Below are positions 1-17,300 of a stretch of 19,952 nucleotides of DNA, piece by piece. The DNA lies in the NCBI GenBank assembly GCA_018985225.1, contig JADGIF010000102.1, positions 1-19,952 on the forward strand, read 5' to 3'. Both the position numbers and the translations under genes were made by a program. This DNA is from Amoeboradix gromovi X-113. Lineage: Eukaryota > Fungi > Sanchytriomycota. The notes beneath the pieces were generated by a model that worked only from the letters and a program-made list of their open reading frames with translations, was not told the DNA's origin and did not search any database. Position 1 is the stretch's first letter. Each line of letters starts with the position of its first letter.

Positions 1-12
1 AAATTAATAAAG

Positions 13-71
13 CTGAAATAATGTTCCAAGTTGTTACAGAAAGTTAGTCTAGTTTTTATATTTGATGTCCC
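13..71 (-). repeat. Left-end TIR (42-71) plus subterminal sequence of a family A Fanzor-like element that runs off the window to the left
   Basis: AGTTAGTCTAGTTTTTATATTTGATGTCCC at 42-71 matches 11267-11295 except for one T. Similarity continues inward: CTGAAATAA..CAGAA vs TTGAAATAA..CAGAA at ~11238-11266. Confidence 0.85.
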
Positions 72-271
72 ATTTGTTTTGTGAATGGAATTTCACCTTA
101 TCACAGTTCTGGTTTCCCAGAAAAAGTAACAACACTAATTGATCCGCTACAGTAATTTCTCACACTTGCACTAGAATATGGCCGGATTCAATAAGAATCC
201 GTGTATTCTAAGTACATGTCCTTACTGCAGTACTCTCAACCTACCTCCAAACAAAAATTGACTATTGAAAA

Positions 272-830
272 ATGAAAGTGGAGCTACTTCATCTAATCCA
301 TGGTTGGCCAAATATGGAACGCTTCCGTAAAAATCAGTCAATCGAGTTGCTCTTCGTTGAAAGTCCTGATTTCTGTGAAATCGAGAATTTCCACAAAGAA
401 ACTAACAGTGCTAGTAAATCCGTTGCAGTATTGTTTCACTACCCTGAGGCCTGATTGAATAAGGATGCAGATACTTGATGTATATATTCCTTGCTGCCAT
501 ATGGTCCTCTATCTATTTGGTATTCCTAAGGTTGCCACAGCTTGTACATGCATTACAGGTATCAAGATATCGCATTGTTGCACATGTGGTAAGAAATCAC
601 ATACGAATTATTAAACAATTGGTTTACAGGTTTGTTAATGACCTCTTCTAGGCATTGAAAGACATTTTATTGTTTCATGTTTGGACTAGTTCCTCAACGT
701 TCATGAATGTATGCTACAAATATTATTTATTTCTTTAGATTTGACATATTCAGGATTGCGTCCATTGGTTCCATTAACCATATATGAAAATGAATAACAT
801 CGAATATTTAAACAATTGGAAAAATCTGGA
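272..830 (+). pseudogene. Decayed family A ORF fragment (putative N-terminal/middle part of the Fanzor-like gene)
   Basis: 463-488 matches 10669-10694 at 25/26 nt; 378-390 equals the reverse complement of 3948-3960. Translates as IENFHKETNSAS...IE*GCRYLMYIFLAAIWS with stops and frameshifts. Ends approximate. Confidence 0.55.
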
Positions 831-943
831 AAAGTCACGCAATTATATAGATACAAACTCTCGATAAATAATTTATTCTACAAAACTCAAGAACTGTCCC
901 TAATGGCCACAAAACTGATTGGTAGGAGCAAAAGTCTGTAACC

Positions 944-1810
944 ATGAAGATTATAGATGGCAAAAAAATTGCATCTACAATACTAGACTCTCTAAAATCG
1001 CATGTACATAATTCCAAACCTACTTTAGCCATAATTCATGTTGGAAATCGCGCTGATTCCGCCTCTTACATTAAAATGAAGCAGAACGCTGCTAAGAAGA
1101 TTGGATTTGAATGCCAGATACATTGCTATGAAGAAACGATAGATCAAAGCCATTTATTAAGCCATATTGAAGCTTTTAATAACGATGAATCAATACATGG
1201 AATTATTGTACAGCTTCCTCTCCCAAAGGCATTTAGTGCCATTGAAGTCCTAAATGCTGTCAATATATTCAAAGACGTCGATGGTCTTCATCGCGAGAAC
1301 ATTGGTCGTCTATCTAGTAGAATGGACACTCCACTTTTTATACCTTGCACTGCAAGAGGTATTTTACATTTAGTAAAATCAACAGAAGTTGAACTAAAAG
1401 GTTGCCATTGTGTGATAGTAGGTATAAGTGATTTGGTAGGTAGGCCAGTAGGACAGTTGCTATTAAGAGAGGGTTGCACAGTTACTTTTTGTCATTCAAA
1501 AACCAAACAACTACCATCATTTATAAATATGGCCGACATTTTAATAGTAGCTATTGGGTCACCAGAATTTATTCGTGGAGAATGGATCAAAGATAATGCA
1601 GTGGTTATTGATGTAGGATGCAATGCAGTGGATGGTAGCGATTCTTTCAAGCTAGTTGGTGATATTAACTATGAGTCAGCTTGTAGGAAGGCTTCTTTTA
1701 TTACACCAGTTCCTGGAGGAGTAGGTCCTATGACAGTAGCCATGTTGATGAAAAATTTGTCTGAATCTGAACAACGTAAAAGTGAGGCTCTGAAATTAAA
1801 AAATAAATAG
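944..1810 (+). CDS. folD: Methylenetetrahydrofolate dehydrogenase/cyclohydrolase (FolD-type, stand-alone)
   Basis: Motifs IIDGKKIA, HGIIVQLPLP, KDVDG, PCTARG, VIDVG, ITPVPGGVGPMTVAMLMKN; 288 aa. Confidence 0.95.
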   Translation: MKIIDGKKIASTILDSLKSHVHNSKPTLAIIHVGNRADSASYIKMKQNAAKKIGFECQIHCYEETIDQSHLLSHIEAFNNDESIHGIIVQLPLPKAFSAIEVLNAVNIFKDVDGLHRENIGRLSSRMDTPLFIPCTARGILHLVKSTEVELKGCHCVIVGISDLVGRPVGQLLLREGCTVTFCHSKTKQLPSFINMADILIVAIGSPEFIRGEWIKDNAVVIDVGCNAVDGSDSFKLVGDINYESACRKASFITPVPGGVGPMTVAMLMKNLSESEQRKSEALKLKNK

Positions 1811-2041
1811 ATTACCTGTTTTTTTAATTCAGTTGTTCGCAACTACGCAGATTCAATCTCAGAAAGCTAGAGATTTTTGTGAATACTGGCTCATTTCTTT
1901 AGCGAATGTTTAAAAAGATTAGTTAACTCGAAAAAAAGTCCATATTTTATCGCATATGCCCCAGGTGAAAGTTAGTTGCTACCCATTACTCCTTTACGCT
2001 AGCCAGGTAGTTCAACATCACTTGTTAAATTTTCTAAGAGT

Positions 2042-2180
2042 TAAGTTTCTTTAGCATGTACTCACATCTCGATCTGCCATTAAATCACAGTGGACAAAGT
2101 GGTGTGGCCTTGGACTTCTGCAAGTGTTCAACTGCCTTTACCCCCAGTCTACTTCACATAGATCATATCCAACTTGTTTC
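2042..2180 (-). pseudogene. TnpB/Fanzor-like C-terminal relic (family C)
   Basis: Minus strand reads ETSWI*SM*SRLGVK...LCP/(frameshift)CDLMADRDVSTC*, matching the TSxxCxxC...CxxC..ADRDxN zinc-ribbon/RuvC-III pattern. Confidence 0.7.
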
Positions 2181-2195
2181 AACCGAACTTTAGTT

Positions 2196-2471
2196 ATGAT
2201 GAACGATCTAGTTGACTTAGAACAGAAACTCCTACTAGACTTAACCCAGATTAATTCTGAGATTCTAGACGTTAAACACGATTATTATAAATCTAAAAAA
2301 AACATGAACAAAAAACTTGAAGAATCGTTGATTGGAATTCTTGAAGCCAAAACAACATCTCTCAAAGGGTGTGAAGCAGAAGAAATGGAGGGAATGATAG
2401 AGAAGTTGAAGTCGCAGACTTATACAAACCAGGACATGGAGGTTATAAAATCTTTTATTAATAAGATTTAG
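2196..2471 (+). CDS. Small hypothetical protein (91 aa, likely coiled-coil)
   Basis: First ATG at 2196 in the 2124 frame; E/K/L-rich; overlaps the ATP12 3' end by 14 nt, like other convergent pairs here. Confidence 0.55.
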   Translation: MMNDLVDLEQKLLLDLTQINSEILDVKHDYYKSKKNMNKKLEESLIGILEAKTTSLKGCEAEEMEGMIEKLKSQTYTNQDMEVIKSFINKI

Positions 2472-3183
2472 TAAAGGAATTCAAAAATAATTTAACACCG
2501 TTCATTTCTCTTACCACATACTCTTCATCTACATCATGGTTATCTTCGACTTCTCCAAACCATTCTATTTGTGCGATAGTTTCCAAGCGAGCCAAAGTCG
2601 CTGCTTTTGCAGGTTCAATCATTCCTTTGCACAAGGACAACCCGATCAATAGACTTTTAGCTGTTAGAGCACTTCTCTCTATCGCAGCTAGTTCGTATTC
2701 GTTGGCTTCGGAAAGGATCTTCTCAATCGCGTCAGCATCTTTCATATTTGATTGTAAAAAAAGAGTGTTAGTGGTTGGTAGCTTTAAATTAAACTTCTTT
2801 CTTAGCGCGATAAGCAACGGATTTGCATGGATTTCCTGCAGATCCTTTAGATTGCTGGGAAACTCGCTAGTAAAGCATAGCGCATCATTTTTAAAAAAAT
2901 CAAGAAGCTGCTTTGTGCATTCATTTTTAGAGTTTATGACTTTTAGATCTAATGCTCTTGAGTAGAGTTGAGATAAAGGAAGTCTTGAAGGCTTTAGTTC
3001 TTTCAACATATTCCATTCCACTAATAGTGATTGAGCAAAATCCTCGGCATGAAAAGGCACTAATATCTCACGATTATTAATCTTCAAAGGCCTATCTTTT
3101 GCTAGGATTTGAAAACCTTTTTGGCTTTTGAAAATCTTCATATTTTTAAGTAACTGTAAGCCAGTAGAAGCCATTGAAGTCAT
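2458..3183 (-). CDS. ATP12: Mitochondrial F1-ATPase assembly chaperone Atp12
   Basis: Motifs DRPLK, EWN..., LPLSQLYSRALD, AKSLLIGL, LARLETIAQIEWFGEVEDNHDVD. Confidence 0.9.
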   Translation of the reverse strand: MTSMASTGLQLLKNMKIFKSQKGFQILAKDRPLKINNREILVPFHAEDFAQSLLVEWNMLKELKPSRLPLSQLYSRALDLKVINSKNECTKQLLDFFKNDALCFTSEFPSNLKDLQEIHANPLLIALRKKFNLKLPTTNTLFLQSNMKDADAIEKILSEANEYELAAIERSALTAKSLLIGLSLCKGMIEPAKAATLARLETIAQIEWFGEVEDNHDVDEEYVVREMNGVKLFLNSFTKSY

Positions 3184-3185
3184 AT

Positions 3186-3260
3186 TCTATGAAAACTACA
3201 CTCAAGGGGTAATGGGGGACAATGGCAGATCTGGATTTTAACTGAGCAAATTATTTATTA
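3186..3260 (+). pseudogene. Short TnpB/Fanzor-like C-terminal relic (family C)
   Basis: Reads SMKTTLKG*WGTMADLDFN*ANYL; ATGGCAGATC is shared with the 2042-2180 relic; resembles ADRDxNAAxNI. Confidence 0.5.
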
Positions 3261-3351
3261 TAATTTCATAACTATTATCACTTCAATAGACCTACAATAT
3301 ATAATTTTTTAAATGCACAAAAAATCCATACTCTTTTCATCCATAACAATT

Positions 3352-3990
3352 GGGACACCAAATATAAAAACTAGACCAAGTCGTTTTTAAAGTAGGTGCT
3401 CCATAAGGAGGAAATACCATTATTAATAAAAGCTCTTCTTTCAAACCAATTTTCTTTCATTAATGTCATTCTTCTCTTTAAAATAAGACAAGATGACCCA
3501 CTATCTCTTTCAAATATACAAGGTCTCTGAGTGTTTAAGCAAAAGGCGCATTATCTTAGACGATACTCTTTATCTGTTCCATTTTCTAATGTTTCCAAGC
3601 TACCACTGCGAGAATATCTCATATCAACATGCATCTGCAAGCGATATAGAATAACTCTTCTACACTCACAAATAGTCTAAAATGGAGGTTCTCGTCAAAA
3701 TAAACGCAAAACTTTAGTGAACACAATGATGCATTTACCTAATCAAACTTTTGCATAGTGCAGCACTCCTAAGAAATCAACTTGAAAGTATAAACGTTTA
3801 TAAACTGTTATTTTCAAATAGATAGAGACCATATTGCATCAAGAAACACATACTTGCAATATTGACCCTTTTCAATACCAAAGCAAGATAGTAAGGAGTG
3901 AGCAAAGCATTGTAGCGGTGAGACTGGCCTTGTTGGTGTCTCTTTACAAATTCTCGATTTTTAGTAAACCATGACTTTAAATAAGGAGAT
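3352..3990 (-). mobile_element. Decayed family A Fanzor-like element with right-end TIR (3352-3376), C-terminal zinc-ribbon/RuvC region and an upstream fragment
   Basis: Minus strand reads CVYFDE../TICEC...ENGTDKEYRLR*CAFCLNTQRPCIFERDSGSSCLILKRR. 3352-3587 is collinear with 10845-11076, including an exact 34-nt run (3554-3587 = 11043-11076). Confidence 0.8.
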
Positions 3991-3998
3991 AAATTAGT

Positions 3999-4610
3999 TT
4001 ACTCTTTGCTAACATCCTCATTTTTTACTTCCCTTTGCCTCCTTTGGGGGATCGATTTATTTAAAAATTCCCAGTTCCCAGTATTATAAAACTGCAAAAG
4101 AATTTCTACTACTTGGTTTACAGTCAAAACAGATGACATAGATAGATTAACATTTTCGTTTAGAGGAAGTCTAGCTGTTCGCATTCCTAAGCTATTAGCC
4201 TTTTCTAAGCACAAATTTTTGTGCCTGTTTTTGTCTACAATTCCGCCCACAACATATGTTGTGCTCAAGTCTAAACTCTCAAGAGTTTCGGTCGCGTCAG
4301 CAGTGAGATAAACCACATTTTCTAACACCTCTTCAATGGGCTGCTTGTACAGTTCAATGTATTTTATATTCCACATTTTTGCGTCTCGAGTTTTTAGCAT
4401 CTTCCATGATTTTGGAGAACATCCCATCACTAGTAATTTGCACGGATTCTTTAGCTTCCTGTTATAGGAATAGCAGTAACGAACCTGATCAATTAGGGAT
4501 TTAAGTTCCTTGTGGCTCATGTACTTGTCAAAATCAAGGTCAATACAAATTTCCAACGCATTGGAATCAATTTCACCCATGAAGTCTCCTAATTTTTTCA
4601 GTGCCTCCAT
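3999..4610 (-). CDS. TRM10: tRNA m1G9 methyltransferase Trm10
   Basis: Motifs ICIDLDFDKYM, QVRYCYSYNR, VYLTADA, YVVGGIVDKNRHK, TARLPL, VLTVNQVVEIL. Confidence 0.95.
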   Translation of the reverse strand: MEALKKLGDFMGEIDSNALEICIDLDFDKYMSHKELKSLIDQVRYCYSYNRKLKNPCKLLVMGCSPKSWKMLKTRDAKMWNIKYIELYKQPIEEVLENVVYLTADATETLESLDLSTTYVVGGIVDKNRHKNLCLEKANSLGMRTARLPLNENVNLSMSSVLTVNQVVEILLQFYNTGNWEFLNKSIPQRRQREVKNEDVSKE

Positions 4611-4743
4611 TGAGTTCGAAGATACAATAAATGAAGGCGATTCGAAAGCCAGGACATTTGGAGTTATAGACTACGCTTTTGCTGAAAAAAGTAATATTTC
4701 TGATTCTTTTGCGCCTAGGATAGATGCGATGATCCAAAAGAAT

Positions 4744-4925
4744 TCAGAGTTCACATATCTCAAGTATAGACAACTTTAGTAGATACCATTTGAACATGTT
4801 CTTTCCTAGATCGATATATCTATAGTCTTGTGACCGCAATGATAGCATTTCAACTAGCGAAAATTACACTTTCTCTTGTGTTATGGCCACATTTAAAGCA
4901 TGTAGCAGTGAAATAGGACTTATTC
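4744..4925 (-). pseudogene. TnpB/Fanzor-like C-terminal relic (family B, intronless copy)
   Basis: Minus strand, with frameshifts: NKSYFTATCFKCGH...FR*LKCYHCGH/DYRYIDLGKNMFKWYL; DNA paralog of 13290-13405. Confidence 0.8.
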
Positions 4926-5068
4926 AATCTGGCTGTGTGATTTGGTGGCATGTGTTATTGAACGATAGAATTAGTGTGGCCGTAATAAATGTTTTTTCAG
5001 CGTATATCCCAAACTGCTCCATTTTACGTTCTTTCTTGGTGAAATTAGGCCAAACCTCGGCTTTTACC

Positions 5069-5998
5069 ATGATTCACGTTGGAATATTACAAATCTTGGT
5101 TTCTTCTCTGTGTTTATCTGTTATGTCCTTTGTTATTAAAGACTTACATAATATTTCATCTTCCAACTTATTGTATCATAGAGCTATCATACAAATTATT
5201 TTATGTCTGTTATTTTCTTTGATCATCAGAGTGAATCCAATAGGTGAGAAGAATATGTTTAAGCTATTACACTTACGAGGAATTGTTGGCGGAATAGCCG
5301 TATTACTCTATTTTGCTACTCTTAAAGAGATTCCTGTCAGTACCGCAACTGCGCTATTTATGACTACTCCATTGTACACAATATTTCTCGCTAGAATGTT
5401 TCTCCAAGACAAGATCACATACTCCAAATCTTTAGCAGTATTTCTTGTATTACTGGGAACTGTATTAATCGCACACCCTAGTTCTTGGACCGATAAGCAA
5501 TCTGATTTAATTGGGTCCATTTTTGCAATATCAGAAGCAATGGTAGCTGCAATAGCGGTAACTATAATTAAAATTATTGGTAACCGAGCTCATTATGTTC
5601 AGCTTGTGTTCTATTTAAGCGTCTATATGCTCATCATGGGATTAGGCCTTAGTATTGTTGAAGGGTTTGTCCCAATTTTTGACGTCCGTGTAATAATAAT
5701 AGGATTCCTAGCAACTGCAGGACAACTACTGATGAATGCAGGACTTCAAAAGGTGACCGCAGTTGTCGGAATGACAGTAAGGTGTTCAGAGGTTCTGTTT
5801 GCGTTTATTATCGGTATATTTGTTGGCGAAGATATAACCAACCAGTCCATTTACGGGTCTGTTTTGATCATATTAGGGAGTTATTTAGTTGGAAGAAAAA
5901 GCAAATCTGACCCAGAATTCACGAGAGTAAAATCTGAGACCAACGACGAGGAAGCTCAAGTTTTAAAGAGAAAGAGCTTCAGTAGCGATGATAAATAA
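5069..5998 (+). CDS. EamA/DMT-family (SLC35G-like) membrane transporter
   Basis: About 10 hydrophobic segments; motifs LRGIVG, IPVSTATALFMTTPLYTIFLARMFLQDK, GQLLMNAGLQ. Start moved to ATG 5069 because the upstream extension overlaps a Fanzor relic. Confidence 0.9.
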   Translation: MIHVGILQILVSSLCLSVMSFVIKDLHNISSSNLLYHRAIIQIILCLLFSLIIRVNPIGEKNMFKLLHLRGIVGGIAVLLYFATLKEIPVSTATALFMTTPLYTIFLARMFLQDKITYSKSLAVFLVLLGTVLIAHPSSWTDKQSDLIGSIFAISEAMVAAIAVTIIKIIGNRAHYVQLVFYLSVYMLIMGLGLSIVEGFVPIFDVRVIIIGFLATAGQLLMNAGLQKVTAVVGMTVRCSEVLFAFIIGIFVGEDITNQSIYGSVLIILGSYLVGRKSKSDPEFTRVKSETNDEEAQVLKRKSFSSDDK

Positions 5999-6003
5999 AT
6001 TTA

Positions 6004-7972
6004 CTATTCGCTATGCACGTGGGTATGCTCTTTTATATTAGTGTGTTCTTTCAAATTTACATGCTCTGTTGCTGACTCATCTAGCGCCGAAATCGAGTTA
6101 TTGACCGAATGGAGTGGATCCAATAAATCATGAAGGGATGTCAGTGGATTTTCGTCTTTATGAATGACGTAATGTTCTTTGTTTTGTTCTTTATGCTGTT
6201 CATCGCTCAAATCAGATTTTAACTGAACGTGCTGCTTGGAGTAGTCGTCCAAATACTTGTTTATATTGTCCCCTAATCTCCTCATCTTATTGTTTCCAGA
6301 TAAGTCTTCAACACTAGAACTTGGCAAAAGTGTTGTATTTGTTCTTGATGGGACTGGAGGTGCCACTGGAGGCAATGCTTGTGGTGCAGGGGTAGTAAAA
6401 CTCTCTTTTGTCGAGACTATAGTTTTTTGTACTTTCCTGGCAATCAAACCCAAATTAGAACCAACGCCAAGTTTCGCGAATCTACTTTGCGATATTTCTT
6501 TTTCTAGTGGTGCTTTTTCTTCAGTTGTTGCAGGCTCGTGTTCTTCCTTAGGCACTTCTTTTGCAACATCTTTTGGAACTTCTTTCAAATGTATTTCAGA
6601 TGGCTCGGATCCGAACATTTCTGTAATTATATTATTTACTTCCGGTGATCTTACTATGTCTTGCTGAATAGGCTGATCCGGTTCATTCTTCTTATCGATA
6701 CTTGGAGTTGAAGAGTGATGGCGAATTTGTTGAGATACGGAAGTTGCTACATTGAGGTCATCTGCTCTAGGTATTGAGCTCGGGGCAACCGAATATGCGA
6801 CACTCTTTCTTCGTGCTAAATCAGTTTTTGGTGAATTTAATTTTTCCAAAATCTCTGGAGTCGCTGGAGAGTCGAACACTAGGTCTAGTGGGAACACGTT
6901 TCGATATTCCATCTTTGGAAGAACCATTGATTCTCGAAATACTTCTCTACATTAAATAAAAATACAAAATTCGTTTTTCTAATAATGAGCCAAGCAGCCC
7001 AATTTTAACTTGCCGGTTGGATACCCTGGGTTCGACTGATACCTCAAATATTGTATCGCTATAAAACCCGTAGTAAAAGTGATTAATTGGTAATTGTGGG
7101 AATTTTATTAACAACTTACCTGCAAGTTTCTTCAGAGTGAAGTTAAAACTAACATTCAGCAAGAATCCAGAGTTATGCGAAACATCATTAGATTCCTTGG
7201 TAGATGTTGGATTGGTGAAATAATTAAATCCTGGAACTTTCAAGTTGACTGTGATATCTAAAATCATAGACAATCCAGAGTACTCAAATTGACCATCGAT
7301 TAATATAGTACCATCTTCCTCTAGTCCAATTACCTTTAGCTCTTGGAATTTGGGTGGGTCTGCATATTCCAAATGGGTGATCTTAATATTTTGAAAATAA
7401 TCAGATTTCATTCGAGAATTGAATTTATCACTCAAATATGACAACTGCCTTTCTTTAAAAGTTTTAGAGGTTGTGTAGGCTATAAACTGACGCGCAACTA
7501 GTAAGTTGAAGATTGTATCCTTATTTTCAAATGTAGGATCGATCATCGAAGTGTGCGCAAAACATTTCAAGAACAACTTTTGCGACTGAGAGTTTTTGTA
7601 TTGGTTAGATCTTTCAATTAATGCCATGTACCAGCACCAAAGTTCTTCCTGGTTTAAGAATTTTAGAGATATTAATTCGGAAGATTGAATAATCAGCATA
7701 TCTGTATGATAATATATATGGGCATTTGATATATCTATGGACCTGTGCATAGATGTCATGATCAAAATACTCTTGTGCAACTGGACAGTACATGGTGAGT
7801 TGTTTACAAAACAGCTACAAGTGAGTATATTCAGCAGAACCTGGTTATTTACTTCATTTGAGGTCAATAAACGATCGTTTTTTTGTTTTGGCAAGTTGTA
7901 TATATAATAAATAGGTACTAAATACGCAATCAATATACCAATTAATATTCCCAGAAGTAGAGACGAAATCAT
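6004..7972 (-). CDS. NVJ2: Nvj2/TEX2-like SMP-domain membrane-contact-site protein; 2 exons (7972-6966, 6946-6004), 649 aa
   Basis: N-terminal TM, PH-like region (EELWCWYMAL) and SMP motifs (FNLLVARQF, LKKLAGKLLIKFPQLPINHFYYGF). Splicing gives LEKRILEVFRESMVLPKM, the expected end of the SMP domain. Confidence 0.8.
6947..6965 (-). other. 19-nt spliceosomal intron GTATTTTTATTTAATGTAG
   Basis: GT-AG; removal joins ORFs 6947-7972 and 6004-6927 in frame. Confidence 0.88.
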
Positions 7973-8003
7973 ATGGTTTCAAGATGAAAAATTTTAAATT
8001 AAT

Positions 8004-8786
8004 CTATAATGATTTACTAATGAATTTGTACACCTCAGTTGCTTCTGGAATGTGAGACCTCGCTAACAAATATGGTTTTAATATGTTTTTGAATTCCTCA
8101 TCTAAATTAATAACTAAAATACCTATCCAGTATTGAAATTTAGGCGTAAATACGACTTTAGATATACAAGAAACTACCACAGTATCATTGGGTTGTTCAT
8201 TTTGGCACCACAAGTACAGTATTTGTTTTATAAATGGGAATGGCATTTTATTTGATTCTAAATTTTGTATTAACTGGTCGGCGAGCTGCAAAGAACAAGG
8301 CGTCCATTTGTTAAGTATGTATAAGTTGGTATTCAGGGATTGTGAATAATCGAACAACCTTTGTTCCTTGTCTTTATCCAGATGCACGCGGTCAGGTGTG
8401 TACATCATTTCAAATTCCTTAATTTTCTCTATAGTGGACAATGTTTCTTGTGAGTACTCTTTTTTCTTGAATTTCATAGAGTGCCCCATTATATCCTTTG
8501 TCGAAAGAGATAAATAATCCTTTGTTGTCAGAGTATGAAGAAGATAATGTATAGTTCCATTATTTTCATACTTTTTCTGTAATAATTGATCAAAAAACGG
8601 AATAAAAGGATGGTCATTTATATAGCTAACAAATATAAACACTATAGCATTAACCGCAAATGAAATTTGGCTAAAATCAAGACTTTTGGCCAGATTCATG
8701 CACTTTCTAAATTTCTCCTCGTTATTGAACATTAAAGACATATCATGAATAGTTTTGAATGATATGTTGTTGGCTCTCAGTTCCAT
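8004..8786 (-). CDS. Hypothetical protein, possibly a divergent CNOT11 (CCR4-NOT subunit)
   Basis: 260-aa ORF; HPFIPFFDQLL and C-terminal SCIS...SHIPEATEVYKFI loosely resemble CNOT11 motifs. Confidence 0.5.
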   Translation of the reverse strand: MELRANNISFKTIHDMSLMFNNEEKFRKCMNLAKSLDFSQISFAVNAIVFIFVSYINDHPFIPFFDQLLQKKYENNGTIHYLLHTLTTKDYLSLSTKDIMGHSMKFKKKEYSQETLSTIEKIKEFEMMYTPDRVHLDKDKEQRLFDYSQSLNTNLYILNKWTPCSLQLADQLIQNLESNKMPFPFIKQILYLWCQNEQPNDTVVVSCISKVVFTPKFQYWIGILVINLDEEFKNILKPYLLARSHIPEATEVYKFISKSL

Positions 8787-8980
8787 TAATAAAAATTACA
8801 ACACGCGGGTAACAAGGAGGAAAAAGATAAATAATATTTACTGTTTTAACCACAAGAGCAGAGGGATGGTACCCAAGAAGCAGCTAATGGTAAAGACATA
8901 AAGTTGTAGCACTTTTATCTAGCACTTGATGGGATATCAGACAATAAACTTTTCACGGAATCCGTAAGTGTTTCATTTTG

Positions 8981-10169
8981 ATGACTTGGTATATCGTCGA
9001 AGCCAGTCGAACAGCTTTCGGTACATTTGGCGGATCTTTAAAGCATCTCTCAGCTACTGATCTAGCCGTTAGTTCCTGCTCTAAGAAGATTAAAGATTAC
9101 TCCAAGTATATTGATAGTTGCATTTATGGAAATGTTCAACAGACAAGTGCAGATGCGCCCTATTTATCAAGACATTTGGCGTTAAGAGTTACAAACAACA
9201 TTGAAGTACCGGCGGTCACAGTAAACCGCCTTTGTGGATCTGGAATTCAGTCCGTAATTCAAGCTTGTCATGAGATTTCTGCAAAAGAATCTCACTTGGT
9301 GTTGGCGGGCGGTACAGAGTCTATGTCCCAAGCTCCATTTTCTGTACGCGGAATTCGTTTTGGCACACAGTTAGGCCAGAATCATGTTTACGAAGATACG
9401 TTATGGACCGCACTGACTGATTCTTATTCTAAAACTCCAATGGCAATTACTGCAGAGAATTTAGCTGAGAAGTACGACATCACTAGAGAAGCTTGCGATG
9501 AGTATTCCTTGTGTTCTCAGCAGAGATGGAAATCAGCCAACGATCGTGGTATATTTAAAAAAGAAATTGTGCCAATCACCATCAAATCAAGAAAAGGTGA
9601 TATCGAGTTTGCACAAGATGAGCACCCAAGACCGTCTACTTCTTTAGAAACGCTTTCTAAGTTAAAACCGGTATTTAAAAAGAATGGGGTAGTGACTGCT
9701 GCAGGAAGTAGTGGCATAGGAGATGGTATAAGTTTCTAACATAGGAGCAGCGTCTGTGCTAGTTGCATCAGAGAAAATGGTTCAAGAACTTGGATTAAAA
9801 CCATTGGCAAAAATTGTGAGTTGGAGCACTGTAGGAGTTGAACCTAAATTAATGGGATTTGGGCCTGCTAAAGCTATTCCAGTTGCGCTAGAACGAGCAA
9901 ATCTTAAACTGGATCAGATTGATTTAATTGAAGTAAATGAAGCCTTTGCAAGTCAATACTTGACAATTGAAAAGGTACTGAAACTTGATCGAGCTAAGAC
10001 AAATACGTGCGGTGGAGCAATTGCTCTGGCTCATCCGTTAGGTGCGTCTGGCGGTAGAATTATTGGCTTTCTTAGTCATCAAATTGCAGCCGGAAATGCT
10101 AAATTTGGACTAGCCAGTGCTTGTATTGGAGGTGGACAAGGTATCGCAATAGTACTCTCTTCTGTGTAG
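8981..10169 (+). CDS. 3-ketoacyl-CoA thiolase (ACAA2-like); 2 exons (8981-9725, 9745-10169), 389 aa
   Basis: Motifs TVNRLCGSG, GGTESMS, DEHPRP, spliced SGIGDGAASVLVAS, NEAFA, GGAIALAHPLGASG, SACIGGGQG. Confidence 0.95.
9726..9744 (+). other. 19-nt spliceosomal intron GTATAAGTTTCTAACATAG
   Basis: GT-AG with CTAAC branch motif; removal restores the conserved thiolase DGAA motif in frame. Confidence 0.93.
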
Positions 10170-10242
10170 TAAAAATGCTTTCTTTGCCTAATTTTTGTTT
10201 CTTCGGATCACACCAGCATGACCTTGACCTAATACGCGCATC

Positions 10243-10740
10243 ATGATCTTTATGAAACCAATTAGTTTAGTAATTCTAGCGCTGGTTAGAAGCCAAGATG
10301 TTGATAGTTATAATTTGGAAGAAAATAATTTTACCGAATCATATAGAGATCCTACAGTACCTATGTCCGTGAATTTACAATATAACAGCTGCAAAAATTT
10401 GTTGGTTTTTATATATCCAATAATTTATAGCACTCTGGTTTGAGAATAATAGTAAATTACATTAACTCGTCAACTTTTTGGACTTGCGAATTCAGCCGCA
10501 GTTGCAACTCTTTAAGGATTCAGTAACAACAGATATGTAACTGATGTTCCTCGAAAAAAGTGATGAATTCCTAGAAAGGCAAGAAGTTCCACAGAGAAAC
10601 AGGCAATTCTAGTTGCTGCGTTGCAGTGGTTCCTCACACATCCAGAATCCTGGCGCAGGGTTGAATATGGATGCATATACTTGATGTATATATTTATTGT
10701 TGAATCACATAGTCATATTGTTGCAAATAATGTCTAGTCT
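10243..10740 (+). pseudogene. Decayed family A ORF fragment (paralog of 272-830 and ~3800-3970)
   Basis: Reads LMFLEKSDEF/KFHRETGNSSCCVAV/HPESWRRVEYGCIYLMYIF with frameshifts; 10669-10694 matches 463-488. Left boundary uncertain. Confidence 0.55.
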
Positions 10741-10844
10741 TTATACTTGGTTTCTGAGCTGTCGCAGAGTGTGATCTTTAAATCTAATTTTATCGTTGGC
10801 ATTTTTCCGTAAGAATATTAGTGTTTTACGTTATAGAGGCGGAT

Positions 10845-11295
10845 GGGACACCAAATATAAAAACTAGACTAACTGGTTTTAAAGGTGCACCATACGGAGG
10901 ATATGCTATCATTAATAAAAGATCTTCTATTATACCAATTTTCTTTCATTACTTTCAATCCCCTCTTCAAAATAAAACTAGAAGACCCTGCATCTCGTTC
11001 AAATATATGAGGTCTTTGAGCATCTAAGCAAAAGGTGCATTTTCTTAGACGATACTCTTTATCTGTTCCATTTTCTTTTTCTTCTTACTACCTTTCGTAT
11101 AACTTATTTTTTGTATTCTTTTCTTCTTATTAGTCATTGTTTCTAAGATTTTGATGGATGAAAAGCTTTGATACTAAAATAATTTACTTGAACCAGTCAG
11201 ATTAGTTTAATTTAATTTACTATCGGTTAATACACACTTGAAATAACGATTCAAACTATTTCAGAAAGTTAGTCTAGTTTTATATTTGATGTCCC
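10845..11295 (-). mobile_element. 451-bp non-autonomous TIR element, internally deleted, derived from a Fanzor-like transposon (family A)
   Basis: TIRs at 10845-10874 and 11267-11295 (1 mismatch, 1 indel). ATG 11137 gives MTNKKKRIQKISYTKGSKKKKK, joined out of frame to KEYRLRKCTFCLDAQRPHIFERDAGSSSFILKRGL...* (stop inside the TIR). Flanks are GAT/AAT. Confidence 0.85.
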
Positions 11296-11324
11296 AATTG
11301 TTTATTTTTGGAAACCTCCACTTG

Positions 11325-12341
11325 ATGGTCTACGGAAAAGTGCTTATCGCAGGCGGTTATTTAATCCTTGATCCTGCCTATTCCGGTATAGTCCTAAGAG
11401 CTAATGCCCAAATAATTTGTGAAATAAAATCATCAGACCAAATCAAAATTGTTACAGAATTTGGCAATTATCCAGAAAGAGAAAACTTGTTCATCTCTGC
11501 ATGCTTATTTGTTTCTCAGATATATTTTGATAGCAATGATATCAAATGCCTTAACTTTGAAATCAATGTGGTTGCAGATCCTGTTTTCTATTTAAATGGC
11601 AAAATTGGAATTGGAAGTTCTTCCGCCTTTTGCACTAGTCTAATTCATGCAATATTGAAGTTCCACAATATTTCAGATGATGCTACTCTCTTCAAAATTG
11701 CTTCATTATCTCATTTTATGGCTCAAGGTAAAATTGGAAGCGGATTTGATATATGTGCTGCTGTTTTCGGTTCCTGTATATATAGGAAGCCGCTTGTCTT
11801 AGATAAACTTGTCGCCATAGATACCTGCAGTGTCAAAGATGCTTTGTCTGCTACTTGGGATATTGATATTACAACTATCACATGGCCTTCAGAATGGTTT
11901 GTTAAAATGTTTGCTTTCTCAAAAGGGCAACCCACAATAGTAAATGCCGGCAACTACTTAGAGTGGAGATCGTCTCAGAAGGGATGTATATCTGAACTTG
12001 ATGCCATCGAATTCACTACAAAACAGATTTCGACATCTATTGACCTCAAGGACCATGTAATGCTGAAATCAGCATTTGTTAATTTGGTCGATCAGTACCA
12101 TCAATTAGGCATCGACTGTAACATAGATATCATACCTCGGCAATGTCGGCTATTTTTCGAGAACGCATTTAAGCTGGACACTTGTATTGGTGGTATGTGT
12201 CCAGGCGCAGGAGGAAACGATGCAATTTTTGCTATAACCACTTGCGAAAATGACGACAAGTTGATTAAAATGGCTAAAGACTACGGATTTGACTTAATAA
12301 ATGTTAGTGTTTATTATTTAGGCGCTTTATCAACCGGTTGA
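11325..12341 (+). CDS. ERG8: Phosphomevalonate kinase (ERG8-type GHMP kinase)
   Basis: Motifs GKVLIAGGYLIL, KIGIGSSSA, AQGKIGSGFD, PGAGGNDAIF; alternative in-frame ATG at 11289. Confidence 0.93.
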   Translation: MVYGKVLIAGGYLILDPAYSGIVLRANAQIICEIKSSDQIKIVTEFGNYPERENLFISACLFVSQIYFDSNDIKCLNFEINVVADPVFYLNGKIGIGSSSAFCTSLIHAILKFHNISDDATLFKIASLSHFMAQGKIGSGFDICAAVFGSCIYRKPLVLDKLVAIDTCSVKDALSATWDIDITTITWPSEWFVKMFAFSKGQPTIVNAGNYLEWRSSQKGCISELDAIEFTTKQISTSIDLKDHVMLKSAFVNLVDQYHQLGIDCNIDIIPRQCRLFFENAFKLDTCIGGMCPGAGGNDAIFAITTCENDDKLIKMAKDYGFDLINVSVYYLGALSTG

Positions 12342-13000
12342 AAGAAAGAGTCCATTGTCTTTTGATTGGAATTCGGTGCAGCTTTCTTAGTTATCAGTTC
12401 TGGTCCATCATTTTTAATGCTTCCGACTTCTTTTCTTACAGCATATATTTTCAGTTCATTTTCTGACGGATGTACTAAGTCTTTAACATCTTCCCATTTA
12501 CCATTCAGCCATCTGTGAACGTCTTGTTCGCTGATAATAAGAGGCATCCTATGGTGGAATTTTCTGATTTGAGAATTCGCGCTAGTTGTAATGATAGTAA
12601 ATGTGAAAATCTCTTGTTCACCTTCTTTCATTTTATGGCAAAGGCCTGCCAAGTAAATAATTTTTGAATCATCTTTTGAAGTGAAGTAGTTGGGCTCCCT
12701 TTTAGTCCATTCATAAAACCCATTAATGGGAACACAACATCTTTTTTTTAGCATACCTTTATAGAGTTTGGAGCTTTCCAGCTTATCGTCTCTGGCGTTA
12801 AACGTTGAGTATTGTTTAAGAACCCCCCATCGATAGATATCCAGCTGAAGAATATGATCTTTTTCAAGCAAAACTGGCATTAATCTCATTGGCGGGTTGT
12901 TATATGAAGGCCGATATGATTCAATGTTATTAAATTGCTTTGCCCCCGTAATATTTTGTAATTCCTCTGGATTTAAGAAGAGAGCAGTTCTACCACACAT
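12314..13000 (-). CDS. HMCES: SRAP/HMCES abasic-site processing protein
   Basis: N-terminal MCGR, FNAR, RCCVPINGFYEW, HHRMPLI. Confidence 0.95.
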   Translation of the reverse strand: MCGRTALFLNPEELQNITGAKQFNNIESYRPSYNNPPMRLMPVLLEKDHILQLDIYRWGVLKQYSTFNARDDKLESSKLYKGMLKKRCCVPINGFYEWTKREPNYFTSKDDSKIIYLAGLCHKMKEGEQEIFTFTIITTSANSQIRKFHHRMPLIISEQDVHRWLNGKWEDVKDLVHPSENELKIYAVRKEVGSIKNDGPELITKKAAPNSNQKTMDSFFQPVDKAPK

Positions 13001-13287
13001 AAAGACGTTTTAAAATTTAGAGACGTACAATTCTTGATGCTCGCATGCAATGCGCAGCACTAGTTTAATCAATTCATGGCTCGGAGACATACCAGATTTT
13101 GTAACGAGTAATTTTTTTAGTTTTCTATTTGTCTTACCTCAAGGGAAGTTGAAATACAAAAAAGTCTAAGGTCGGCACTATTCTGAAAGAACGCCTCAAG
13201 AGACAGAGATGTCCCAGAGCTAATCAACTTCTCCTTGGGCGATGATCGCCTGTGTTAAATGTGAAGAATTCAAAAATCATGAAGATT

Positions 13288-13610
13288 TCAAACCCCACAC
13301 TTCTCAAGTGTAGACAACTTGGGGAGATACCATTTGAGCATGTTCTTGCCTACATTATTTTGAAGTACCTGGATTGATGTCTCTATGGTCTTGGTGACCG
13401 CATTGCTGACAATTGACGCAACGATTGCAGCTAGTACAAGTGTTGGACACATCATATTGTTTTTGAATGGTCGCAACTCTAATGAACTTTGAGTTCTTTT
13501 CATTTCGCATATTCTGATGCGATAAAATTGCTCCAAGTCGTAGATCTGCAAAGTGTTGATTGGTGACAAAATACCATTACCAATAAAAAGAAGTCCTATG
13601 ATATTGAGAG
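13288..13610 (-). pseudogene. TnpB/Fanzor-like relic (family B) with a 19-nt intron
   Basis: Reads LLFIGNG.../IQKQYDVSNTCTSCNRCVNCQQCGHQDHRDINP^GKNMLKWYLPKLSTLEKCGV*, i.e. a RuvC-II-like strand, SxxCxxC, CxxCG and RDxN..KNM. Confidence 0.85.
13350..13368 (-). other. 19-nt spliceosomal intron GTACTTCAAAATAATGTAG within the Fanzor relic
   Basis: Same length and consensus as the two host introns; removal restores RDINPGKNM; the paralog lacks exactly 19 nt at ~4806. Confidence 0.85.
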
Positions 13611-13875
13611 TTTATATTTTGTCTTTTTCACTTTCACGCCAACGGTAGTTTGGAATCCCTGCTTTACGTTCTAAAATCAGTAATAAACTAAATCTCTATT
13701 TTTTACCAAGTGTTAATGCTTTTAAACTCTTCTGAGAACTAATTTGGCCTTTCTGCTGCTTAGAACCTCGGAATTGGTATTGTAAAACGCTTTTTCCACC
13801 CTATCCTACAAAAGTACATCACGTACCACTACTTACTTTCCCAAATACCGCTTTTGTGAGCTGCGTCCAGTTTTT

Positions 13876-14049
13876 CTAAGTTTCTGGTGTTGATGATGCC
13901 AAGAGCGGGTGCAATTGTGATATATATTTCAAGTACATTTTTACTGCTGCCCTATGTAATACATCTGCTTTTACGTTACAGCTTGTGCAAGTAAATCTCT
14001 CCAATTTGGTTTTCTTCCGAGTACTAGTCATTGTGCACGCTTAACTAGG
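13876..14049 (-). pseudogene. Further TnpB/Fanzor-like C-terminal relic with degenerate RuvC-III
   Basis: Reads S*ACTMT...ERFTCTSCNVKADVLHRAAVKMYLKY; same spacing as CxxCGxxxHRDxNAAxNM. Confidence 0.55.
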
Positions 14050-14341
14050 AAATACTAATTACATTCCACCAATTTCTCATCATTGTAAACTATGTAAAGC
14101 CACTTTCCTGGAAACGAGAGGCCTCAAATTATCTCTGTAAACAGCATTGTGTATCTCTTAATAATCTCTTGAGATTACGCATATTATTTCTGGGACAATT
14201 TGTAACCATTGCCATTAAGAAAATTATTACCGCGATTTTCATTTAACTGGAAAATTAGATTAAGAAAGATCACTGGAATAACAATAGTTGTCTTATTAAG
14301 AAAATGATTTGTTCAATTAGAATGAAGACCTGTCATCATCC

Positions 14342-14377
14342 GCTTTTACCCCAGTCTACTTTTCATTGAGCATGTCC
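14342..14377 (-). repeat. Family C relic fragment overlapping the RPC1 start codon
   Basis: 30/37 aligned columns identical to 2134-2170; antisense reads TCSMKSRLG. Confidence 0.65.
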
Positions 14378-17300
14378 CATATTTCTGGAATCGTAAAGCC
14401 CAAATCTTATCCATTGCTCCGAGACAATACGCCTAGGACTGTTGACAAGGTTGAGTTTGGCATCTTCAGTAAATCTGATATTGATCGTATTTCTCATATT
14501 GAGGTATTAAGTAGTGATTTGTATAACTATACAACCACCAAAGAAGCGGTTCCATATGGTCCTCTAGATAGGAGGCTAGGTTGCGCTGAAAAGAATGCAC
14601 TATGCGAGACCTGTAATAAGAAGATGGAGGAATGTGTAGGTCATTTTGGAGTTATAAAATTATCTTTACCTATATTTCATTATGGGTTTTTTAAAGGCAC
14701 TCTAGCTATTTTGCAGTGTATCTGCAAGGGCTGCAGTAGAGTCATGATAGATGAACAGTCCAAAAAACGCTATTTGAGGCGATACAGAACAGTGGACTTA
14801 GAAATGACAACGAAAATGAAGATATTTAAAGATATTCAGTCCAAATGCAAGAAAGTAAGTATTTGCATGTACTGCAATTACGTTAATGGTACGGTTAAAA
14901 AGATTGGAGCTATGAAAATTGTCCATGTCAAATTTTCTAAGGTCCCAAATAGCGATACCTCTATGGATGAATACATTGGAGAAATGAGCAGTGTCTTACA
15001 TGTTAACGAGTCTCTTAAGTCTTACATCACTAAGTGCGAGGAAGATGTCAACCCACTATTAACTTATCGCCTATTTGAAAAGATGAGCGATGATGACACT
15101 GAATTAATGGGTCTTAATCCAAAAGTATCCAGACCAGAAAACTTGGTTTTAACGTTTTTTCCTGTTCCACCTAATCAGACTAGACCTTCAGTGGCACAAG
15201 ATGATAAAACTAGCAACGAAGATGACCTGACCATAAAGTTAAAAGAAATGATCATGATTAACTCTGTCATTCGTGTAGCTATTATAGAAGGACAACCCAT
15301 TAACAAGATTATGGACCAGTGGGATACTTTGCAGACTGCTGCCGCCCTGTTTATTAATGCAGAACTGCCTGGTTTTAACGCTGCTAACTCTTCGCTAAGA
15401 AAGCCTGCTCGTGGTATTGTTCAACGACTCAAGGGTAAACAAGGTAGATTTAGAAACAATTTGTGCGGGAAAAGAGTTGATTTTAGCGGCAGGACTGTCA
15501 TTAGTCCTGATCCAAACATGAGAATAGATCAACTAGCTGTTCCTAAGCTAATAGCTATGAATCTAACGTTTCCTGAACGAGTGGATAACCAAAATATTAA
15601 CAAGCTAAGAAAGCTAATTAGGAATGGTCCTAACCATCATCCCGGTGCTTCTTATGTAACTAGTGGCAAATTAAAGATTTCCTTGAAATACGGTGATCGC
15701 CAGAAGGCTGCTGATGGATTAAAGATTAATGATATTGTAGAGAGACACCTAATGGATGACGATGTTGCTTTGTTCAATAGGCAGCCTTCTCTACATAGAG
15801 TTTCTATGATGGCTCATAAAATTGTGGTTTTACCGTGGAGAACTTTACGATTTAATGAATGTGTCTGCTCTCCTTATAATGCTGATTTTGATGGTGATGA
15901 AATGAATATACATGTACCACAAACATTAGAAGCCAAAGCAGAAGCGCTGTTGTTGATGGGTGTACAACATAACTTGTGTACACCGAAAAATGGAGAAAAC
16001 TTGATAGCAGCTACCCAAGACTTTATCACTTGCTCTTATTTATTAAGTCAAAAGGATGTGTTTTTTAGCAAACCTGAAATATCTCAAATATGCGGATATA
16101 TGGATTGCAATTTAATACAAATTGATTTACCAAAACCAGCTATAATAAAGCCAGTTAGGTTATGGACAGGCAAACAGATATTCTCAATTCTTTTAAGACC
16201 CAGTCATTCATCGAATGTGCTAGTCAACTTAGAATGTAAAACCAAGTCTTACACAAAGTGCAACCCCAAAGAACTATGCCCACAGGATGGGTGGCTTATT
16301 ATATATAATTCTACAGTTGTCTGTGGTGTTTTTGATAAGAATGTGGTTGGAGATGGAAATAAGGATTCTATATTTTATGTTATTTTGAGAGATTTTGGAG
16401 CTAACCAAGCAGCCGAATGTATGAACAGATTAAGCAAATTATCAGCTAGATATATGGGAGAAAGAGGATTTAGTATAGGAATCAATGATGTTTGGGCTGA
16501 TGTGGCTTTACAACAGCAAAAACACGATCTGGTTGAACAGGGATATTCAAAGTGTAGGTTGAAAATTGAGGAGTACAAAGACAACAAGTTAGATACACAG
16601 GCAGGTTGCTCAGAGGAAGAAACCTTAGAAAATGTGTTGAGTGGTATACTCTCCAACATTAGAGAAGAAGCAGGTCAATTATGTCTAAACGAGCTCAACC
16701 GATACAATTCACCAATTATTATGAGTAGATGCGGCTCAAAGGGATCCAAGTTAAATGTAGCACAAATGGTGAGCTGCGTAGGACAGCAGATTGTTAACGG
16801 AAAGAGAATTCCCGATAGTTTTGATTCAAGACCCTTGCCGCATTTCCCTCGTAACGATAAGTCACCACCATCCAAAGGATTTGTTCGTAACAGTTTCTTC
16901 AGCGGTTTATCACCTAGTGAGTTTATATTTCATGCCGCAAGTGGTAGAGAAGGATTAGTTGACACAGCAGTTAAAACTGCTACTACAGGATATTTGGCTA
17001 GAAGGCTAATGAAAACTATGGAAGATTTGTGCGTGGGATACGATTATACTGTCCGGACTCCGATTGGTAATATAATACAGTTTCAATATGGTGATGACAA
17101 AATGGATCCACTCTCAATGGAGGGAGATGGCAAGCCGGTAGAATTTCATCGCAATTTGCTAAACGTGCTTCACGACCCCAATCTTAAGTCCAATCCGTTG
17201 TCAAGTAATCAAATATATCAGTTAGCAGTCCAAGAGACATCGAGTGCTTATTGGGCGAAGAATTGCGATATGATGTTTATTACCGATTTGCTCGGTTTCA

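Follow-up and report, generated by a model that had tools for sequence, protein, structure and literature searches.

The elements described here have their closest counterparts in transposons that carry Fanzor or TnpB and give rise to short derivatives without the gene. In Spizellomyces punctatus, the Spu-1 Fanzor1 sits in a terminal inverted repeat (TIR) element with no transposase inside, and 134 ghosts accompany 19 full Fanzor genes in 24 Mb; the ghosts are short copies that have lost the gene but still possess both TIRs and the 3' end, with conserved bases outside the left TIR (PMC10432273, PMC3627910). In IS607-Fanzor2 systems (mimivirus ApmFz2, Naegleria NlovFz2, Mercenaria MmeFz2), a serine-recombinase TnpA overlaps the 5' end of Fanzor2, the nuclease carries DPG and a shifted Glu, and the element has no TIR or target site duplication (TSD) but a fixed dinucleotide at its ends (PMC10530073, 10.1101/2023.08.09.552727). 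Fanzor1-carrying Sola2 elements of dictyostelids have TIRs and AT-rich ANNT flanks (PMC3627910), while bacterial palindrome-associated transposable elements (PATEs) and other non-autonomous IS200/IS605 elements lack genes, keep their ends and omegaRNA, and rely on TnpA/TnpB in trans (10.1101/2023.03.14.532601), a mechanism established in bacteria and proposed for Fanzors. Such traits recur, the omegaRNA and the reliance on proteins in trans as predictions, in the DNA described below. An initial annotation, made from its letters alone, had anticipated probably undescribed Fanzors and omegaRNAs; the element type is already known from ghost loci and PATEs, and what is unusual is its density. The window, as we call the whole stretch analysed, is the 19,952-nt contig JADGIF010000102.1 (C55, taken entire) of Amoeboradix gromovi, a tiny fungus parasitic on algae. 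The assembly amounts to 10.55 Mb in 1319 contigs, and the published single-cell assembly is given as 10.5 Mb with 36% GC (PMC8371127). Our literature search found no paper connecting Fanzor with this species.

The dead sequences in the spacers of the window are probably non-autonomous DNA transposons that arose by internal deletion from elements carrying Fanzor. Direct observations are the fixed ends and the deletions common to many copies, the copy numbers, the longer parents in the genome, the neutral decay that followed insertion, and the one-sided flank motifs. The pieces were located with DNA profiles (nhmmer) made solely from copies outside the window, because the whole-protein Fanzor2 hidden Markov model is too weak for short relics, and the reversed window served as control. 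Every one of the six spacers above 300 bp had profile matches and the reversed window had none, which bears out the initial assignment of the relics to TnpB/Fanzor C-termini; they cover 2562 of the 5548 intergenic bases, i.e., at least 46%. Together with one weaker, BLAST-found piece (3177-3315), 13 relic pieces lie in 20 kb (Table 1), in line with the first estimate of about one per 2 kb, and they fall into four families where at least three subfamilies had been proposed. Families A and C are IS607-Fanzor2 derivatives without TIRs; B and D are TIR elements, B being Fanzor1-like. Copies occur in discrete length classes of about 300/450, 400 and 590 bp. The spacers had been read as a graveyard of genes that preferentially keep their 3' end. 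Retention of the 3' end stands, but complete copies retain both ends, and instead of genes we find non-autonomous transposons with fixed ends that were amplified after internal deletion. An unrelated zinc-finger family, named at the outset as the refuting case, was rejected, as the intact relatives carry RuvC-I, RuvC-II and RuvC-III. Bacterial contamination was rejected as well, since the relics sit between fungal genes with host-type introns and, as a second point, read contigs match unique parts of the window with zero differences.

Family A is present in hundreds of copies or more: a genome search with PF07282 yielded 560 first-look candidates, of which 30 were fetched and proved almost without exception to be members of this family. 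Both ends are common to 26 copies of 566-620 bp with a mean identity of 86%, as is the deletion junction, at which a 150-nt left end is joined to the last ~145 codons. The RuvC-I DPG, deleted from the mini copies, is still present in a longer but broken parent on C385; no IS607 TnpA (PF00239) was found adjoining this parent. The tail reads NESFTSQTC..DRD, where the RuvC-II Glu stands, shifted, immediately ahead of the zinc finger and RD follows the finger. The left flank is RCAG (C in 22/22, A in 18/22 and G in 22/22 copies) and the right end GAG, with neither TIR nor TSD, so that insertion via the common dinucleotide AG after RC agrees with IS607 recombination, which takes place at a dinucleotide common to both partners (10.1101/2023.08.09.552727). 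The ratio of non-synonymous to synonymous polymorphism (pN/pS) was 0.89 for private (singleton) substitutions and 0.26 for all substitutions, which points to dead copies derived from several once-coding templates. The last 60-150 nt are the least diverged part (5-6% vs 9-10%).

The complete family C element of the window is up to 95% identical to other copies and has boundaries in common with them. First-look candidates numbered 176 in the genome, besides 60 for the sister subfamily represented at 4712-4897; C, the youngest family, is present in about 100-200 copies, and the sister subfamily is older. Sister-type DNA adjoins IS607 resolvase matches on C459, C689 and C420, as does C-type DNA on C392, which identifies C as IS607-Fanzor2 as well, and a TIR was looked for in family C and not found. 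The left junction ACCG and right end GGCG, with insertion via CG after AC, were read from only 2-5 copies and common alignment starts. From these few flanks a CCG-type target-adjacent motif (TAM) is predicted, as measured for NlovFz2 (PMC10432273); with the CAG predicted for A, both would be NNG TAMs like those of described IS607-Fanzor2 systems. Unlike those systems, the elements here lie in a nuclear fungal genome and were massively amplified in non-autonomous form, their cores are AG or CG rather than GG, and one lineage has an intron in RuvC-III.

This intron, a 19-nt insert with host intron signals, interrupts RuvC-III of the window's C element; its removal restores RDINPGKNMLKW, and the motif then reads RDINPG. 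It is present in 38 of 39 genome pattern matches, and the spliced form in none. A diverged C copy (L017) carries a 20-nt version of the intron, identical at its ends but not in its interior, and the sister subfamily lacks the intron. Spliceosomal introns of the host are tiny, with a fixed branch position and the pattern GTA..TAAY.YAG, the lengths of which peak at 19 nt (n=13) and 20 nt (n=7), with n=1-4 for each other length. Introns of 19-20 nt are among the shortest known in fungi; they are undiscussed in the text of the A. gromovi genome paper (PMC8371127). Fanzors are known to gain introns (PMC10530073), and our literature search found no description of one so short, in a stretch probably overlapping the omegaRNA.

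Family B likewise amounts to hundreds of copies or more, with at least 1000 first-look candidates in a genome search. Besides the complete element of the window, 28 complete copies were collected, mainly of the ~300- and ~450-bp classes, with TIR pairs at 280-460 bp. The TIRs of B and D are ~30 bp long and Sola-like (GGGAC..GTCCC). The B tail of the window aligns with intact proteins of 585-642 aa (L094, L095, P0129, P0132 and P0133), all with DPG, a C4 finger, RD and the Glu in its shifted position. L094, on a metagenome contig, is an intact TIR element of 2071 bp whose open reading frame (ORF) is 642 aa long; it has no transposase inside, and its right TIR equals that of B at 31/31 nt. L095 is 71% identical to L094, has an AATT duplication on both flanks, and neighbours dUTPase, TFIIB and SMC-like genes, a typical giant-virus set. 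Scans of viral contigs with the B TIR and B proteins gave nothing, or chance 18-mers; the metagenome scan did find relatives. The TIR of B, L094 and L095 contains the stop codon and forms the 3' arm of a terminal hairpin kept in all three, so that any predicted omegaRNA would overlap the end of the ORF. For B-clade proteins HMMER gave no match in the PDB, solved Fanzor1s included. With a low-confidence structure model (pLDDT 48), the top six Foldseek rows were SpuFz or PpFz (E 0.013-0.6), and the top VIA row was GtFz (Z 8.0). The Atlas gave a TM of 0.70 to DUF8286/TNB clusters of nucleocytoplasmic large DNA viruses; placement of B with Fanzor1 is likely but weak. Two further B-clade Fanzor genes on virus-like metagenome contigs (L081, L084) have no TIRs and are followed in both cases by a U-box gene; these are possibly fixed viral genes.

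The left flank of B reads WWACAWWT and the right flank AWWTRT. C stands at -5 in 25/28 copies, compared with G at +5 in 9/28 (P 2e-5), and the much stricter left side fits a TAM. No TSD of 1-10 bp was supported among the B copies. Either B inserts bluntly into a palindrome of 12 bp, or there was a 4-bp TSD of the Sola type that was lost when unrelated flanks were joined by assembly or recombination; read contigs do not decide between the two because they break at B and C, and a nested-insertion test of B yielded no clean empty site. Compared with dictyostelid Sola2, to which the AATT duplication at L095 is a further likeness, the TIRs are ~30 bp and paired TSDs were not recovered in the fungal copies. 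Compared with Spu-1, B reaches its copy number in 10.5 Mb, has no full-length gene on one contig, ends in GGGAC/ANNT instead of TA, keeps C-terminal codons in its copies, and belongs to a protein clade that HMMER does not match to solved Fanzor1s. In two B copies (L014, L056) family A sequence adjoins the right end but not the left, and begins in both at almost the same position of A, and two copies on different contigs (L038, L047) have identical right flanks, indicating a duplicated or allelic region.

Family D has a sister TIR (GGGACATGCTC..), which ends at 14378, is decayed at 2171 and about 3177, and occurs at 15 further places in the genome. Inward of the TIR at 2171, a decayed CxxC..DRDV motif at 2042-2110 is shared with loci L045 and L036, which makes 1940-2171 an old mini element of the fourth family. 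The ATG of the essential gene RPC1, for a subunit of RNA polymerase III, lies within the TIR at 14378. Residues 18-21 of RPC1 align to residue 7 of the yeast and residue 12 of the human protein, the next Met lies far within the conserved clamp region, and an in-frame stop stands upstream of the ATG; an upstream exon as the source of the start was rejected, since no host-type intron of 19/20 nt lies nearby. Thus, the D TIR supplies the only AUG of RPC1, unless a non-AUG start is used. An ATC at 14390 stands near the expected position of the ancestral start. The first ATG of ATP12, which overlaps a D-type end, is a far weaker case, as alternative Mets are present. An unannotated ORF of ~90-115 codons (2124-2471, plus strand) begins at the decayed D TIR and overlaps the end of ATP12.

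The initial annotation also expected intact Fanzors elsewhere in the genome. They do exist but are rare, not abundant: one clear case and a few candidates. The clear case, on C542 (L061), is an uninterrupted 671-aa Fanzor2 with PF12323 and PF07282, identical to EukProt EP00835 Amoeboradix gromovi P004065. Its best PDB match is mimivirus Fanzor2 9b0l (E 2e-13), RuvC-I DPG is present, and EEFTSQTC..DRD shows the shifted Glu before the zinc finger, followed by RD. A 19-nt intron-like sequence lies just upstream of the starts of both TnpA and Fanzor2 at this locus. The genome has 12 IS607-type resolvase loci, and a PF00239 TnpA adjoins Fanzor2 on C542 and C459, the latter contig holding a candidate intact or nearly intact Fanzor (C459:10329-11946; coordinates only), where TnpA occupies 10329-10730 and the Fanzor2 frame has 603 codons with one TAA. 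Long open frames related to the B clade, likewise candidates by coordinates only, lie at C363:1568-2113 (frame of 693 codons), C1184:5144-5614 (frame of 748 codons) and C1157:99-1229 (436 open codons as far as the contig edge). A fifth Fanzor lineage of the genome is present on C99 (L024:274-1170), where a locus of higher GC carries a 299-codon open, internally deleted, typical Fanzor1 that matches PpFz1, GtFz1 and SpuFz1 (E 2e-15 to 3e-9).

By analogy with IS605/IS607 work and the SpuFz ghosts, the mini elements would have been moved in trans by the putative transposase of a full element, in the manner of PATEs, except that the host is a eukaryote and the mobiliser would be a serine recombinase or a putative DDE-type enzyme, not Y1. 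The 3' coding tail may owe its retention to its overlap with the right end and the omegaRNA scaffold. For as long as the genome had an intact Fanzor, the omegaRNA of each copy would consist of the scaffold and its own right flank as guide; the nuclease so guided would cut the unoccupied site beside the TAM, and the copy would be restored or spread when the break was repaired from the allele that carries it (10.1101/2023.03.14.532601; 10.1101/2023.08.09.552727; PMC10432273). Such cut-and-copy retention would be a likely reason for the high load despite pressure for compactness, and we consider it reasonably probable that Fanzor activity contributed to that load.

Several points weigh against this account. 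The omegaRNAs of all families are predictions, and folding support is modest, with z scores near -2 for family A and for the viral ends, no folding signal for the B and C copies of the window, and only 1-2 compensatory pairs. The transposase that would mobilise B and D is putative. Both B flanks are ANNT, and the two sides match in 4/28 copies as against 1.6 by shuffling (P about 0.07). The TnpA that overlaps the C542 Fanzor2 has a TAG stop in its helix-turn-helix (L061 2767-3488), and this Fanzor2 is only about 50-57% identical to the tail of family A and hence not its direct parent. The family A sample was selected by Pfam score, which can only lower pN/pS. Amplification as plain miniature inverted-repeat transposable elements, spread by a transposase only, with the Fanzor tail carried along next to the right end and no role for Fanzor or omegaRNA, is possible, though we hold it to be unlikely. 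Transposition requires both ends anyway, the folding signals are weak, and the B flank motif is partly palindromic, as from a transposase dimer; yet four independent families all retain the 3' coding tail and none the 5' part of the gene, the left (TAM) side has the stronger flank motifs, and family A diverges least in its last 60-150 nt.

A further and rather doubtful proposal combines several observations and makes the ghosts part of genome function: splicing of the short intron would separate nuclease mRNA from omegaRNA, the TIR gives RPC1 its start and perhaps a promoter, and Fanzor cutting together with recombination between copies would have shuffled most flanks, which, if true, would explain the missing TSD pairing. 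It is very improbable that full-length Fanzor genes arrived in many separate insertions and then decayed on the spot, starting at the 5' end; some pieces of the window are old and one-ended (114-259, 13910-14076, 10548-10702) and longer broken copies exist, but dozens of copies with the same deletion junction and both ends largely refute it, and the discrete length classes also count against it. Domestication, in which the host would keep the copies as a library of guide RNAs (or promoters) for a surviving Fanzor in defence or regulation, hardly deserves credence, for although the genome still has one intact Fanzor2 ORF next to a broken TnpA, conservation is higher at the 3' ends and RPC1 starts within a TIR, the copies decay neutrally, the guides would be the host's own flanks and so serve self-maintenance rather than defence, and the surviving Fanzor2 is of a different subfamily with a different 3' end.

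Read as deletion derivatives of Fanzor elements, the spacers offer a dense eukaryotic case of ghost elements with predicted omegaRNAs, comprising four independent families in one small genome. The many flanks yield TAM predictions (RCAG for A, ACCG for C and WAC before ANNT for B), and the survey supplies nuclease candidates, namely the 671-aa A. gromovi Fanzor2 and the divergent 642-aa Fanzor1-like proteins with an intact TIR element. It also reveals a near-identical TIR common to a fungus and metagenome or giant-virus-like DNA.

At the level of single pieces (Table 1), the stretches first marked at 10869-11085 (B), 4744-4925 and 13288-13610 (C) and 13876-14049 (A-like) were recovered by the profiles, as was the paralog at 272-830 (A). 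Others held in part. Of 3352-3720, the portion up to 3600 is B and the extension to 3720 is less certain; of 2042-2180, the decayed motif at 2042-2110 stands, whereas a 'VDWG' reading in 2136-2171 came from the D TIR; 3186-3260 is a decayed D-type end with at most a trace of RuvC-III codons and was not recovered by profile; and of the paralog at 10243-10740, 10548-10702 is family A, while for 10243-10547 a comparison with 240 kb of other DNA from the genome gave no paralog. The putative coding relic paralog at 14342-14377 turned out to be the D TIR. The A-like pieces at 114-259 and 3718-3987 and the B left ends at 10-71 and 11266-11295 had gone unlisted.

Table 1. Relic pieces and introns of the window
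Position	Strand	Feature	Evidence
10-71	-	Family B left end; TIR start GGGAC at 71; element runs past contig edge	nhmmer E 2e-15
114-259	-	Old A-like piece; RuvC-III codons and 3' end	nhmmer E 1e-16, translation
350-886	-	Decayed mini element of family A (IS607-Fanzor2 derivative) with internal disturbance; right end at 350	nhmmer matches 351-550, 708-886
1940-2171	-	Old family D mini element; degenerate left TIR ~2130-2171, deletion, CxxC/RuvC-III remnant 2042-2110, 3' region	nhmmer 1940-2138 E 4e-13
3177-3315	+	Heavily decayed D-type end; overlaps first ATG of ATP12 ORF (3183, minus)	weak: 67% over 139 nt to 14240-14374
3352-3600	-	Family B 3' half; right TIR ends at 3352; left end missing	nhmmer E 4e-84; tblastn to intact relative P0129
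3718-3987	+	A-like sister subfamily, 3' part, ~70% to A	nhmmer E 8e-34
4712-4897	-	3' part of an element of the family C sister subfamily; intron absent; right end at 4712	nhmmer E 2e-26
6947-6965	-	Host intron	joins long frames
9726-9744	+	Host intron	joins long frames
10548-10702	-	Family A 3' fragment	nhmmer
10845-11295	-	Complete family B element, 451 bp; left TIR, then deletion, then open tail (10872-11084) with Fanzor1-like Zn ribbon and RuvC-III, then right TIR and its terminal hairpin	nhmmer E 1e-125
13247-13646	-	Complete 400-bp family C element (IS607-Fanzor2 derivative)	nhmmer 13246-13501+ E 1e-58
13350-13368	-	19-nt host-type spliceosomal intron within family C RuvC-III motif	host intron signals
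13910-14076	-	Old A-like Zn-ribbon piece, 65-68% to A	nhmmer E 6e-14
14240-14378	-	Family D end; TIR terminus at 14378 holding RPC1 ATG (14372-14374, plus strand)	BLAST, genome matches

The genes between the relics are ordinary fungal housekeeping genes, including FolD, ATP12, TRM10, EamA, thiolase, phosphomevalonate kinase, SRAP and RPC1. One element end lies ~30 bp or less from the start of phosphomevalonate kinase (11295-11325) and another ~12 bp from the stop of TRM10 (3987-3999), so close that the elements may supply promoter or terminator sequence.

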